A stretch of 64,000 bases of DNA, taken from the NCBI GenBank assembly GCA_965644295.1, contig CBFFRP010000019.1:186001-250000 (forward strand), written 5' to 3'. A model generated the notes under the pieces. The model was not told where the DNA came from. It searched no databases and saw only the letters and a list, made by a program, of their open reading frames with translations. Origin of the DNA: Paraphysomonas bandaiensis. Lineage: Eukaryota; Protista; Chrysophyceae. Below are positions 10,251 to 57,128 of this stretch, one piece after another; within the stretch, counting starts at the first letter, position 1, and every line of letters starts with the position of its first letter. Position numbers and translations under genes: made by a program.

Positions 10251-10569
10251 TGTCAAGGTTTGACATTATATGAGAAGTATTAACTTAACAACAGAAGGTA
10301 ACTTATACTCAAAGCTGAGAATTATAAATTATAATCAATGTCTCTTATCATTCATCAATATCATGTTGTCTCCACTACCACTCATTTCTCGTACGACGAT
10401 CTTACATCGTCACTACAACTTGCATCGTCACAATATTCCGTTTTACCGCTATGTGCTTATCGTCATTCATTCTCACAATACGATTAACAAGACTACAACT
10501 GTATAATACAGTAATTTAAATACCTTATAACTACAGCTTTCAATTGCTCTCATATAGCAGAACTCAACA
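10251..10569 (-). repeat. 3' LTR of the Copia element
   Basis: Direct repeat of 15464-15782; on the minus strand it is preceded by the PPT TTGAGAGGGAG (10570-10580). Confidence 0.97.
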
Positions 10570-15479: not shown

Positions 15480-15782
15480 TATATGAGAAGTATTAACTTA
15501 ACAACAGAAGGTAACTTATACTCAAAGCTGAGAATTATAAATTATAATCAATGTCTCTTATCATTCATCAATATCATGTTGTCTCCACTACCACTCATTT
15601 CTCGTACGACGATCTTACATCGTCACTACAACTTGCATCGTCACAATATTCCGTTTTACCGCTATGTGCTTATCGTCATTCATTCTCACAATACGATTAA
15701 CAAGACTACAACTGTATAATACAGTAATTTAAATACCTTATAACTACAGCTTTCAATTGCTCTCATATAGCAGAACTCAACA
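15464..15782 (-). repeat. 5' LTR of the Copia element
   Basis: Direct repeat of 10251-10569. Confidence 0.97.
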
Positions 15783-32687: not shown

Positions 32688-34496
32688 ACCTCTGAGAGAA
32701 GTTGTAGAAAGTACTAGCACGTGTCGTTGTGAGGATGTGGGATTAAGACGTTTATTTTCTTGTATATATCGTATGGCGACTGGATTACATTGCAATGTGT
32801 TTTGTATATACAAGAGCTATATATCGCTGAGAAGTGTAGTGTGTATGTGACAAGGATCAATTTTATATTTGTTGTTTGTATATTATTTATCCTTGCACTA
32901 AACATCACTGTTGTTGGTTAATCATAATACTATAACAATATAAATGTTGTTGCATCATACTGTGGTGTGCTTGGATTATTCCTAATTTTGACCCACAGTG
33001 TGCCGGTTGGAGTACTTAGCGCAGTACGTATCTACTAATGGTTTCGTAGTAGTCATAGTGGTGTAATGTATGAACACTAATTGTTTTCAATATACTTCTA
33101 CACACTCTCACTGGTTTTCTTAACGCCACCCTCGATATGGGGCGATAATAGCACTACTAGCTACTTGCATTCCTTTAAACCACATATATATATATGCAGT
33201 AACAGGAGTGTACAAGTGAAATGCTGTATCTTGATATTGAAAAATAGATTAATTAATTCTACAGAGCAGTTTACTTCTTTCTTTTGTGCAGTCAGCGATA
33301 CAGTACTCTCACTTAAATTCAGTTCAAGTTTATCTTAAAATTTATGAGAAACAGTACTTGATACAAGAAAAATGCATCCACAGTTTGAGTCTAACGCTCA
33401 ATAAAGAACACTCTGTTCTTGGATTGCTCCTTGAATTCTTAGAAATCCGGAACCGAAAGGTACACATTGAAGAACCACCTCAACTTTTGAGCCCAGGGGC
33501 AACTACAGGGCAGAAGTCAGAAAAGAAAAATAGACAGACGCTATAAATTCGGTGTATGTTATGTGCCTCATATAAATCCCTTAAACGATCGTCACGAATC
33601 AGACATATATATTTACTTAATCATTGGCACAATAATTCAATACAATCCATACATAGTAACTTACCATTTTCGAGTAATCAGTGCGGCGGTCAGTACGGTC
33701 TCTCTGTTGTGTCAGCTATGCTCTCAGATGGATAAGTGACACAGCACCAGGAAGTACAGAAAAGCGGTTAGTGTCTTGAAATATTTCAATCCTCATAGTT
33801 TCCTGAACTACATCAAATTAGATTTCTTTTATTACCAGTATTTCATGGCATATGAGTGTCGTGATGTCTCAAAATAAGTGTATCATCTTTAATCAGTGGT
33901 AGTGACAAAAATGGTAATAATATCATTGACATTCATTCACGTATAAGCACACCATGGTATGGACTTACATGTAGACATTAGCGGGTAGATTAACGAGAGG
34001 GATACAAGTAGTAGGAAAAGTGTATCTCTTCATCACTTTCCTTACTATTCATACAAGTTCATGTGCTCTCCAATGATACACTCCAATTCCTTATCGAGTG
34101 GTATATTTATTCCCCATCTCATGAGGTGTTAATTATGACTATGTAGTACATATGAATTCATATACACACTCCATCATCCTATAGACATTCTGTGGCTCTC
34201 ATAACTACCAAAAAAATTTGGTGGTCGGGAAGTGTGCCTTTCAAAAATCCATTCAAATATTTGAAGTATATTTTTTTGTACATGTTCTTTTTTCTTACTG
34301 AATGACGGTGAGAAGAAAATCGACTGGAATGAGTGAAGTGTGACTACGAAGTGACTAGATAATAATGTATAGATGTATATGGTGAGGATAATACAGACGA
34401 CTATACCAAGTGGTTTGTTATCTATAGCGAGATGAATAGAAGTTAAGAGTATATTAAATATAGTCATACTGATTGTTTGAATATAATAATTTCATA

Positions 34497-54220: not shown

Positions 54221-55137
54221 ATGGAACAGCACTTGCAGCAGTTTCACGAGATCACTCACACGGTTGAGAAAGCTCTCATTACATGGGCTCGTCCAGAGGG
54301 ATGGGGCGAGTCTCCTCTAGCGAGCTGGCCTCTGACCAGCTTCGATACCGCCATTACTATTGCTCTAGGGTACTTGGCATTCGTGCTCTTCGGAAGTGTA
54401 TGTATTTATGAAACATTTTTTTCTATTTAACATAACATGCAGCTCATTATGCAAGCTCTTCCCAGTGTCCCTGGACTTTATCCTCTTAAATTCATTTACA
54501 ACATTGCTCAGGTCATGTTGTGTTCATACATGTGTATCGAGGCTGTAATCAGAGCTTATAGTGCCAACTACCCGATAATTCCGGGATGCCCCTTTAACCA
54601 GACAGATCCTCCGATGGGATTCGTGCTTTACATCTTTTATCTCTCAAAAATATTAGATTTTGCCGATACTGTTTTCATCATTCTTGAGAAGCGTTGGAAA
54701 CAGCTTAGCTTTCTCCATATCTACCACCACACCAGTATCTTCCTGGTGAGTGCCGTATGCTCTTGAGTTCCTCATTTAATTTTTGTGTTTAGTTTTACTG
54801 GCTGAATGTCAATGTGGGGTATGATGGCGATGTCTATCTCACAGTTGTGTTGAACGGCCTTATTCACACCATTATGTACACATACTACTTTGTTTCTATG
54901 CATACCAAGGATATTTGGTGGAAAGAAGCTCTCACTATGAGTCAGATGATTCAGTTCGTTCTCATGAATTTACAAGCCGCCTACCTCCTTTATCTGCCCC
55001 AGTCACCCTTTCCTCGCAATATTATCGTGGCGTACCTCATCTACATTTTGTCTCTTTTAGTTCTCTTTGCCAACTTCTATGTCGTGTCCTACATGACCAA
55101 GGGTAAGAAGAAGAAGACAGACAAGAAGAACAAATAG
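54221..55137 (+). CDS. ELO-family fatty-acid elongase (PUFA elongase-like), 3 exons
   Basis: KILDFADT, QLSFLHIYHH, NGLIHTIMYTYY, QMIQF, C-terminal di-lysine KKNK. Confidence 0.95.
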
Positions 55138-55349
55138 AAGTTAGCATGGTCTTTACCGTATCTATTGGACGCGTGCTTTGACCTTGACGAAGCTATTTAT
55201 TAGTTTAGTTGTGTAATCTGTCATATATTTGCGGAGTGGTTAACTTGTTGTTGCGATATGTTGATGGTGTTTGAGTAACCTGATTGCGTTTACATATTCG
55301 CTGCGGCAAATTTTCTAACTAAGTGGATATATGCAGTACTTATATTACA

Positions 55350-55602
55350 GGGATGTATTTTTCGACCTAGTCAATTTGGGGGAATTTCCTAGTCACACCA
55401 AAATTGGTGTAAAAACCTAGTCAAAAGGTTCGAAAACCTAGTCATTAAATAATTAGGGATGTATATGCGAGTACAATTCATGACTAGGTTTAATACTATA
55501 ATTGGCTAGGTTGAGTCATTTATTGCTTTGACTAGGTTTTTACACCAATTTTGGAGTGACTAGGAAAGTCCACCAAATTGACTAGGTTGAATAATATATC
55601 CC
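55350..55602. mobile_element. MITE (253 bp) of the same MULE family as 37351-39097
   Basis: GGG..CCC termini, long inverted arms of CCTAGTCA repeats, flanks TATATTACA / TATATTATA(TTACA). Confidence 0.9.
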
Positions 55603-55873
55603 TATATTATATTACATTTTCTATGAACACTTTAGATATACGTTGCCAAAGTGGCAGATTGGATTTCATCTGGTATTATGATGTATTTTCATTTAGATAT
55701 ATGCAGTTCGTTGTTGTATTACTTCGTACTATACTTCGTGTGGTATGTGGTAGTAGTAAACATAGCATATCTCAACCGAAATACAAACATTTTGTGTATA
55801 ATCAAGAAGACCGCGATTAATATTATTATAAGTATAATGTTCAATTAATATTTGCATAATGAATAAATAACTT

Positions 55874-55940
55874 TTGAAAATCAAAGGATGTCAGAAATAC
55901 CATGGGTAGTTTAGCATGGTTTCGTCATTCTCCTTTTCAA
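55874..55940 (-). promoter_or_regulatory. SECIS element (canonical, type I-like)
   Basis: aaagga-ga-AUGAC-GAAACCAUG-cu-AAA-cuacc-CAUGGUAUUUC-UGAC-a-uccuuu: helix I, UGAN/NGAN quartet, helix II, and AAA 11 nt above the core. Confidence 0.88.
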
Positions 55941-55966
55941 CTATAAAGTAATTGAGTCCGCGAGAG

Positions 55967-56020
55967 AAAATTTTCAGACAACGCAATCACAACGATATTC
56001 GCGAAGTCATCATTCATTTT
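55967..56020 (-). promoter_or_regulatory. Second SECIS-like hairpin (non-canonical apex)
   Basis: aaaau-ga-AUGAU-GACUUCGCG-AA-uaucguuguga-UUGCGUUGUC-UGAA-a-auuuu; the AA is only 9 nt above the core. Confidence 0.5.
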
Positions 56021-56047
56021 ACAAGTGCGACATTAATACTACTGAGT

Positions 56048-56077
56048 GGAGGGTGTGGTACAGAGTCTACACCCTCC
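56048..56077 (-). promoter_or_regulatory. Stem-loop 7 nt downstream of the UGA (Sec redefinition element-like)
   Basis: GGAGGGUGU-12 nt-ACACCCUCC, a perfect 9-bp stem. Confidence 0.6.
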
Positions 56078-56464
56078 GCGGGCCTCAGGACTTTGGTGCC
56101 GGTTTAGGGTAGTCCGACAGACTCTTTATGTTTTTCCTCGGACGTCAGGAACCCTGGGACGCACCCGAGGATGGCTACAGACGTACGACTTATATCAACA
56201 CAGCGAAAATTCAAATCATACCTGGGATGAAGCAGTAGAGTTTGGCTGACTACGATAGTACCCCACTCCTAATATAATTCCCGCCATTGCCGCAGCAGGA
56301 AATCCTCCTAAAAAGTACGCAACAGCTATAACAACAAGGATACTCCACTGCGGAACAACTTGTCCAAATATAACTACATCAGATGAGCTGGGTGTAGTAG
56401 AATTGGATTCATTATTCGTTGGCGCATTATCTGGAACTATGGCGCCATTAACAATCTTTACCAT
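56067..56464 (-). CDS. Small membrane selenoprotein (about 116 aa, two in-frame UGA), FAM241/DUF4605-like with a SelK/SelS-like tail
   Basis: Exon 1 56464-56222, 47-nt GT-AG intron, exon 2 56174-56067 = PSSGASQGS-U-RPRKNIKSLSDYPKPAPKS-U-GPRRV-TAG; SECIS downstream. Confidence 0.82.
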
Positions 56465-57128
56465 ACTTGGCTCTAACGGTATTCGTTAAATATATATGGA
56501 GACAAAGTGGAATTGATTAGCTGACCTAAGTATCCTCTTAAAGCAACTAGAAAGAATAGTTTGTGTTCTTTACGTAGTCGTCTCTTTAAGTGATACTTTA
56601 ATATAAGTGACTATTATACATGAATATGTCCACATGTGAGTGTGCGTGTTATGATACTCTGTATACCGTTAGAGTACATTACAACACTAACACAGTATTA
56701 GGGGAGTCTAGAAACCAGACATTTTTCACTCAAATTCGAAATTATAGTGTAGAATATTCATAAAAATATATCTTTTTGTATGACGTTACAGTTTTAACAT
56801 ACGGGGTATGTAGTGTACATACAGTGCGGTGTAGATATGTACGTATGATATACTACATACCTGGCAGTACTGGAGTGGGATGGGCGTATGTGAGTAGCCG
56901 TGTGGTGCATCTGTTCAACCTCCACATGATCGAATTGAATCCAACAAGTACTTCGACTTTGCCCATCCCTAGCGTCAGTGAAATCACTATCATATCAACA
57001 TAATACACTATACATATAGCATACCTTAATAGATACCAACAATACACATCACGATATTGCAACTACATTCTATTAAACTTAATGTGGGCATAAATTAATT
57101 TAGTATTATTAAAATACTACACCATATA

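Follow-up and report, generated by a model that had tools for sequence, protein, structure and literature searches.

The region 55809..56607 (-) of the window, which is the whole 64,000-nucleotide stretch of DNA that was analysed, very probably contains a genuine, expressed two-exon selenoprotein gene in which both in-frame UGA codons are recoded. The predicted product comprises 116 residues with selenocysteine (Sec) at positions 91 and 111. It belongs to a widespread and apparently undescribed family of protist selenoproteins, in which the second of these positions is occupied by either Sec or Cys. Our confidence in the redox chemistry proposed below and in a link to the animal FAM241 proteins is lower than that in the gene and its recoding.

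Gene structure and transcripts

The ATG at 56464 (-) opens the ORF 56464..56216(-), which appears in the ORF list with 82 codons (82 aa). After Gln81, the sequence GTATGA…CTGTAG constitutes an intron of 47 nt (56221-56175, -), beyond which exon 2 continues in phase as PSSGASQGS, TGA (56147-56145), RPRKNIKSLSDYPKPAPKS, TGA (56087-56085), GPRRV, and TAG (56069-56067). The 143-nt 5'UTR was searched for an upstream ATG, and none was present. The features of the gene are as follows.

55809..56607 (-): mRNA, minimum extent, from the RNA contigs of runs X1/X2/X9
56222..56464 (-): coding part of exon 1, Met1-Gln81, with the N-terminal motif MVKIVNGAIV, a Ser-rich spacer and a hydrophobic helical hairpin
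56175..56221 (-): phase-0 intron of 47 nt, GT..AG, joint 56174/56222 in three RNA runs
56067..56174 (-): coding part of exon 2, residues 82-116 and the TAG stop, from codon comparison with L025, L026 and L023
56145..56147 (-): first in-frame TGA, Sec91; TGA also in L025 and L026, TCA in L023
56085..56087 (-): second in-frame TGA, Sec111; the aligned position is TGA in nine other genes and the terminal Cys of ten members
56048..56077 (-): GC-rich 9-bp hairpin, possible Sec-redefinition-like element, 7 nt past the second UGA
55967..56020 (-): weak proximal SECIS-like element, uncertain (R1 10 bits, E 8.9; SECIS-like fold)
55877..55942 (-): SECIS element, type I, from reading of the sequence, its fold, and covariance models R1 and R2

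Read contigs from three RNA runs, each of a different study, and from the DNA run X16 were aligned to positions 55300-57000. The 752-nt contig of X1 spanned 55809-56174 and 56222-56607, the 651-nt contig of X2 spanned 55893-56590, and the 691-nt contig of X9, a polyA metatranscriptome of a slightly diverged strain, spanned 55854-56590. Exactly the segment 56175-56221 was absent from all three RNA contigs, and the X16 DNA was colinear with the genome and did not contain the splice joint 56174/56222. Among the contigs at 55300-57000, no other splice joint touching the gene was detected. Since the RNA contigs skip only 56175-56221, the mature mRNA holds both TGAs, the TAG, and the downstream stem-loop, as far as contigs, which show neither true RNA ends nor rare isoforms, can represent it. 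The first TGA was identical in all four runs aligned (X1, X2, X9, and X16). The X9 strain showed zero differences from the window in 56067-56174, and five substitutions and one insertion in the 3'UTR (55854-56066). By inspection, its variants at 56009 and 56000 preserve or improve the fold of the proximal SECIS-like element, and the sole variant within the stem-loop 55877-55942 was located at 55905, in the apical loop.

The first-pass annotation, which was made from the letters of the sequence, had proposed the 82-aa ORF, the 47-nt intron, the frame of exon 2, both TGAs, and a SECIS about 140 nt past the TAG, and every one of these coordinates proved to be right. The intron at 56175-56221 was spliced exactly in three RNA runs. 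The transcripts reach at least 55809 and the 3'UTR thus covers the SECIS, as had been expected, and neither polyadenylation before 55940 nor skipping of the UGAs was seen in the RNA contigs. The gene had also been described as invisible to standard gene callers. Consistent with this, the MMETSP transcript product P0001 (90 aa, 99% identical, C-terminus ...SSQPSSGASQGS) represents the spliced frame, which the gene call terminates at the first TGA, and nearly all members of the family are either truncated or read into the intron.

Directly downstream of the selenoprotein gene, positions 55350-55640 of the window hold a high-copy dispersed repeat. Its summed contig depth in X16 was ~45,000, compared with ~83 in the flanking single-copy DNA, and many X16 contigs continue from it into unrelated sequence. 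An ORF at window 54814-55137(+), convergent with the selenoprotein gene, encodes a K-rich C-terminus and the sequence LIHTIMYTYYF, which resembles the motif HxxMYxYY; the ORF looks like the terminal exon of an ELO (fatty-acid elongase) gene.

Protein family and conservation across the UGA codons

An exhaustive phmmer search with P0001 yielded 20 proteins and two profile searches added more, so that ~40 small family proteins were found in total, none of which carries a Pfam domain. Their common features are the start MV[KR]IVNGxIV, a Ser-rich spacer, the motif [IL]FGxxxPxW, a hydrophobic stretch with an invariant central Gly, GxGY, and a Ser/Gly linker. The spliced members end in the tail motif NI[KR]G[IVM][SG]D[LY]PKP, and no other part of the family is as well conserved between distant eukaryotes. 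In the AF2 model of the relative P0004, predicted from the family alignment, helices 45-59 and 61-82 form a hairpin (pLDDT 85-92) and the tail is disordered. A fold search of the ESM atlas with this model returned TM scores that were all <0.4.

About ten public predictions run '…QV…' into the intron at the same phase-0 position. Predicted proteins of this kind are P0002, P0005, P0006, P0008, P0012-P0015, P0017, P0018, and P0020. The spliced public entries are cut at the TGA, and nearly every database entry is wrong at its C-terminus. Because gene callers either stop at the TGA or read into the intron, the family is invisible in protein databases.

Ten members terminate in Cys at the Sec111 column (…PKPPAKC, ...PKPxxKC), and the others stop one residue before it. 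When the stop-ending genes were read as DNA, nine of nine stopped at TGA, which was followed by 4-6 in-frame codons, as listed below.

L023: call ends …PKAAPKS; after TGA, GPRSQV
L024: call ends …PKGG; after TGA, CPPPV
L025: call ends …PKPKRS; after TGA, GPSRV
L026: call ends …PPPKRS; after TGA, GSKV
L027: call ends …PVKRG; after TGA, GPASNC
L028/L029: call ends …PVNR; after TGA, GGGKC
L030 (Palpitomonas bilix): call ends …PPKS; after TGA, GSRAC
L031: call ends …PPKG; after TGA, GANMC
L032: call ends …PVRSG; after TGA, GSRPC

Across the family, the TGA111 column therefore alternates between TGA and Cys, the classical signature of a selenoprotein. An upstream in-frame TGA at the position of Sec91 was found in L025 and L026, both of them unannotated genomic contigs in which the intron is present. 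Exon 2 reads GGGS-U-GRPRANIKGISDYPKPKRS-U-GPSRV in L025 and MGGG-U-GRPRPNVRSISDYPPPKRS-U-GSKV in L026. L023 has TCA (Ser) at the same position and is open into the same tail. The first Sec is confined to the near relatives of the window gene, and no Cys counterpart occurs at Sec91 (Ser in L023, absent elsewhere). A metagenome search with four close members produced 70 pattern matches, none of which was confirmed by tblastn.

The tail codons of the window gene differed from those of L023 by 15 synonymous and 8 nonsynonymous changes and from those of L025 by 11 and 6, respectively, and L025 and L026 differed by 11 and 7. In the comparison of the four tails, synonymous changes equalled or exceeded nonsynonymous ones in every pair, the codons past the second TGA included. 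This synonymous-rich drift between and after the TGAs indicates that the tail is under protein-coding constraint. Among the four near relatives, the window protein stands furthest apart (46-52% identity, versus 60-66% among the other three). UGA91 was therefore probably present in their common ancestor and changed to TCA in L023, which argues for its retention by selection, though not for an essential role.

These results agree with the expectation of the first-pass annotation that homologues would be conserved past the first TGA and carry TGA or Cys at residue 111. Its proposal of both Sec91 and Sec111 in a hairpin membrane protein is supported; Sec111 lies in the Cys/TGA column, and Sec91 is limited to near relatives and replaced by Ser in one of them.

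SECIS element and other RNA structures

The stem-loop in the 3'UTR has its AUGA at 55928-55925, 139 nt beyond the TAG. Helix I is formed by pairing of 55936-55931 with 55888-83 (AAAGGA/UCCUUU), helix II contains 9-10 bp, and the apical loop is CUAAACUACC, with the apical AAA at 55912-10. The 3' side of the core is the UGA at 55893-91, which supplies the GA at 55892-91. All of the features of a SECIS, namely the AUGA/GA quartet, helices I and II, the apical AA, and a location inside the 3'UTR, were present.

The Rfam SECIS models gave no match to the window element at E<=10. The models of Rfam release 15 likewise failed on all of the bona fide SECIS tested from this genome and from the relatives, and their silence on the window element is thus uninformative. 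A custom pattern scanner located the SECIS elements of SelK (two copies), two GPx genes, and one Rdx-family gene, and these elements and the window element have the common core AUGACG…(U/C)GA. In an RNAalifold consensus of ten elements, helices I and II were recovered, and 11 of the 16 pairs showed compensatory changes.

Two covariance models were then used. R1 was built from ten elements, from which the window element was excluded and in which the two elements of L025 were included. On both strands of the 64 kb, R1 placed 55877-55942(-) at the top with 20.6 bits (E 0.02), the runner-up scoring 16.3 bits, and it gave 24.8 and 21.6 bits to the held-out real SECIS of two further Sec-GPx genes. 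R2 was built from seven elements taken only from unrelated genes of this genome. Its best match in the window was again 55877-55942(-), with 18.0 bits (E 0.056 over 142 kb), and 3'UTR elements of the relatives scored 28.4, 25.7, and 21.3 bits; neither of the two elements of L025 was found by R2. By arithmetic, the R2 E-value scaled to the 258-nt 3'UTR on one strand is ~1e-4. In the whole-genome search, R1 listed only the five training elements of this genome and two new matches of >25 bits, and the score of the window element would not stand out (E>10 over 125 Mb). The window SECIS is convincing by its placement in the right 3'UTR and not by its score alone.

The two new R1 matches lie outside the training genes at G000:C152:190440-190504(-) (26.4 bits) and G000:C323:87205-87272(-) (25.5 bits), and may mark further selenoprotein genes. 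Within the window, a SECIS-like match of 16.3 bits occurs in two identical copies, 10295-10365(-) and 15508-15578(-), evidently a repeated element, and an AUGACGG-containing match of 15.7-17 bits occurs at 34288-34369(+) with no obvious ORF upstream.

The proximal segment 55967-56020 has a SECIS-like fold, yet R1 gave it only 10 bits (E 8.9). L025 and L026 contain two AUGACG elements each, and L023, with one Sec, contains one; the second AUGACG element of L026 was not recognised by R1 or R2. A second SECIS may or may not serve the two-Sec genes, with one element per Sec.

A hairpin formed by 56077-69 and 56056-48 starts 7 nt after UGA111 (-17.1 kcal/mol, z -0.05), and in the window it is no more stable than shuffled sequences. 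At the equivalent place, the z values were -2.8 in L026, -2.3 in L023, -4.9 in L027, and -7.9 in SelK of this genome. No hairpin follows the first UGA of the window gene (z 0.33). It is possible that the hairpin after UGA111 has a role similar to that of a Sec-redefinition element.

Selenocysteine use in this genome

The genome (G000, 62.6 Mb) contains one tRNA-Sec above the Rfam cut-off (69.6 bits), which ARAGORN called as SeC/tca. SelK is encoded in three exons on contig C373 and ends in …HCAAGG-TGA-G-TAG, and an in-frame TGA is present in five GPx loci. UGA is also an ordinary stop here, according to public gene calls.

The SelK gene occupies L009 1431-1780, corresponding to G000:C373 ~141964-142313. 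A perfect 20-bp hairpin lies ~10 nt past its UGA (z -7.9), and a ~165-nt piece of its 3'UTR is duplicated, which gives the two SECIS copies at L009 1852-1917 and 2017-2081. AUGACG follows the internal loop in every SECIS found (L009, L011, L013, L015, L016, and L020), and some of the SECIS elements of this genome are very short (~50 nt in L016). Upstream of the Sec-GPx gene of L016, positions 370-1334 form a tandem array with a period of ~76 nt, which draws false mir-297 matches from Rfam.

Alternative explanations for the UGA codons

The gene might encode an ordinary protein of 90 residues that ends at the first UGA, in which case the similarity downstream and the stem-loop would be features of the 3'UTR or chance. 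Public gene callers predict exactly this product (P0001), UGA91 is situated in a non-conserved linker, and the first UGA lacks a following hairpin. Such a protein is nevertheless very improbable, given that the 25 downstream codons are conserved as protein with synonymous drift, that L023 has a sense codon at the place of UGA91 and reads into the same tail, and that this tail is what distant eukaryotes conserve best. Decoding of the UGAs by a near-cognate tRNA for Trp, Cys, or Arg, or a reassignment of UGA, is just as improbable. Stop-codon read-through does exist in eukaryotes, and Sec insertion is itself a prediction. Against this, Cys alternates with TGA at one column, the SECIS in the 3'UTR has the core common to this genome, the genome encodes a tRNA-Sec and other selenoproteins, and the use of TGA as an ordinary stop speaks against reassignment. 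Accordingly, insertion of Sec at both UGAs is the preferred reading. Partial termination at UGA91 could still yield some 90-residue product beside the full-length protein.

Relationship to known families

The selenoprotein family MSP was rejected on comparison of its published alignment with the family alignment (Lobanov et al. 2007, PMC2375036 supplement 2). SelK/SelG (PF10961) was likewise rejected as a family assignment, as the model did not match the window gene and the best relative reached 18.4 bits against the cut-off of 23.3 bits. A diverged paralogue of SelK, as opposed to a separate family, would fit several observations. With the Pfam SelK_SelG model, the tails of four relatives fall into a common register (18.4, 15.5, 11.4, and 10.4 bits), hhalign and hmmsearch both matched a short 'G.NI[KR]..' segment to SelK of this genome, and the overall architecture is similar, as is, by eye, the N-terminal pattern M-x-x-I-x-N-G-x-V. 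However, all PF10961 scores are under the cut-off, and the model misses the window gene at E<=10 and matches, in this genome, only the true SelK at C373. The family HMM scored the genome's SelK at -0.7 bits, with 163 of 2000 shuffles as good, the hhalign probability was 2.8%, and the two-helix hairpin differs from the one helix of SelK. A SelK paralogue is thus considered improbable, and the sub-cut-off alignments of the tails are explained equally well by a very distant SelK link and by convergence in composition.

The protein had been annotated at first pass as FAM241-like, and the family may be the unicellular-eukaryote orthologue of animal FAM241 (DUF4605), whose Sec/Cys tail would have been lost in animals. 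For three members, one chordate DUF4605 cluster was the best Pfam-bearing language-model neighbour (0.81-0.84; 172-175 of 256 features), and DUF4605 matches the hairpin of P0014 with 10.4 bits. FAM241B begins MVRI..NG.IV, which corresponds to the shared pattern MV[KR]I..NG.IV. The architecture is also comparable, since FAM241 proteins are described as having a conserved 20-residue N-terminus and a C-terminal membrane domain, with ER partners and an unknown function (PMC11880036). On the other side, all scores are sub-threshold; PF15378, with a cut-off of 27 bits, had no match in the genome at E<=10, and P0014 reached only 10.4 bits. The fold search returned no useful match, and FAM241 is stated to be absent from single-celled eukaryotes (PMC11880036). 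The resemblance noted at first pass is suggested by the language-model neighbours and not by the DUF4605 profile. The link to FAM241 is a consistent, sub-threshold lead, and orthology is possible, though on balance unlikely. We prefer to treat the window gene as a member of a family of its own.

Proposed mechanism

We infer Sec insertion, topology, membrane identity, and redox chemistry from the features of the sequence and its relatives. The single-intron mRNA would be translated through both UGAs as selenocysteine, directed by the SECIS in the 3'UTR, with SBP2 and eEFSec carrying out the insertion at both codons. The product would consist of the conserved MVKIVNG N-terminus, a Gly-hinged helical hairpin that serves as membrane anchor and leaves both ends on the same side, and a flexible Ser/Gly-rich tail ending in RPRxNI[KR]xxSD[YL]PKPxxx-U-Gxxx. 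Sec111 would be the conserved reactive residue of the family, replaced by Cys in other lineages.

A Cys lies 1-6 residues after Sec111 in six of the nine other TGA genes, and in five of these six it is the last residue (U-G-x3-4-C). This arrangement suggests that the downstream Cys and Sec111 may form a selenenylsulfide redox pair, an idea that is purely conjectural. The window gene and its near relatives end in Val, and Sec91 lies 20 residues upstream of Sec111. In this lineage, Sec91 might be the partner of Sec111 and form a diselenide with it. Sec91 may also not be catalytic, judging from its low-complexity linker and the Ser in one relative.

An extended scenario, which we regard as rather doubtful, would have the protist family represent the ancestral form of FAM241, an animal 'unknome' family, and perhaps a distant relative of SelK. 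FAM241 would then have begun as a hairpin protein of the ER whose Sec/Cys redox tail disappeared in animals, and in one protist lineage the C-terminal resolving Cys would have been exchanged for a second Sec, giving a diselenide tail and perhaps two SECIS elements.

Significance

New eukaryotic selenoprotein families are rare, and the largest algal survey found counts 42 (PMC7539508). Neither this survey of 42 families nor the study of Lobanov et al. (2007; PMC2375036) names such a family. A search of the literature, whose coverage is incomplete, found no paper for the motif strings. Members come from distant groups of eukaryotes, including Palpitomonas, Ancoracysta, and the relatives of this genome. 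The alternation of Sec and Cys at one column offers a clean system for the role of a tail-borne Sec in a membrane protein, which is also a live question for SelK and SelS, and the two-Sec lineage represents a natural experiment, with loss of the terminal Cys and gain of an upstream Sec. A literature search found no paper that links FAM241 with selenocysteine. Mice with a FAM241 double knockout show no visible phenotype (PMC11880036); should the FAM241 link be true, the family would provide a first clue to the function of this conserved animal protein.

Comparison with known selenoproteins and FAM241

Like MSP, for which two Sec have been reported (PMC2375036), the protein encoded in the window is a predicted protist membrane selenoprotein that carries two Sec. 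MSP crosses the membrane several times in ~170-230 residues and has its GSUCWP motif within a membrane segment, whereas the window family has an MVKIVNG start and a DLPKP tail and shows no sequence resemblance to it. With SelP, SelL (UxxU), and PDI_e (GUGUU), the gene shares the presence of several UGAs in one mRNA and possibly, as in SelP, of two SECIS elements. It differs from these multi-Sec proteins in that its Secs are 20 residues apart in a disordered tail, and in that the first Sec is confined to one lineage and gives way to Ser, rather than Cys, in one relative.

FAM241A/B resemble the window family in their length of ~120 residues and in the order of a conserved extreme N-terminus, a low-complexity spacer, and a C-terminal hydrophobic domain. 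In contrast, FAM241 ends right after the membrane domain, is without a Sec/Cys tail, and is not known to be a selenoprotein.

In design, the window protein resembles SelK and SelS, which are also small, membrane-anchored, and SECIS-dependent, with a disordered Gly/Pro/basic tail and a Sec a few residues from the C-terminus. In addition, a hairpin closely follows the penultimate UGA in SelK of this genome, and one also follows UGA111 in the window gene. The window protein differs from SelK and SelS in its helical hairpin in place of a single helix, in the family-specific tail motif NIKGxxDLPKP, and in its two Secs. Cys forms are frequent in the window family, unlike in SelK, which has been reported in algae almost only as Sec forms (PMC7539508). 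In summary, the window family works like SelK and SelS in principle and is separate from them in sequence.
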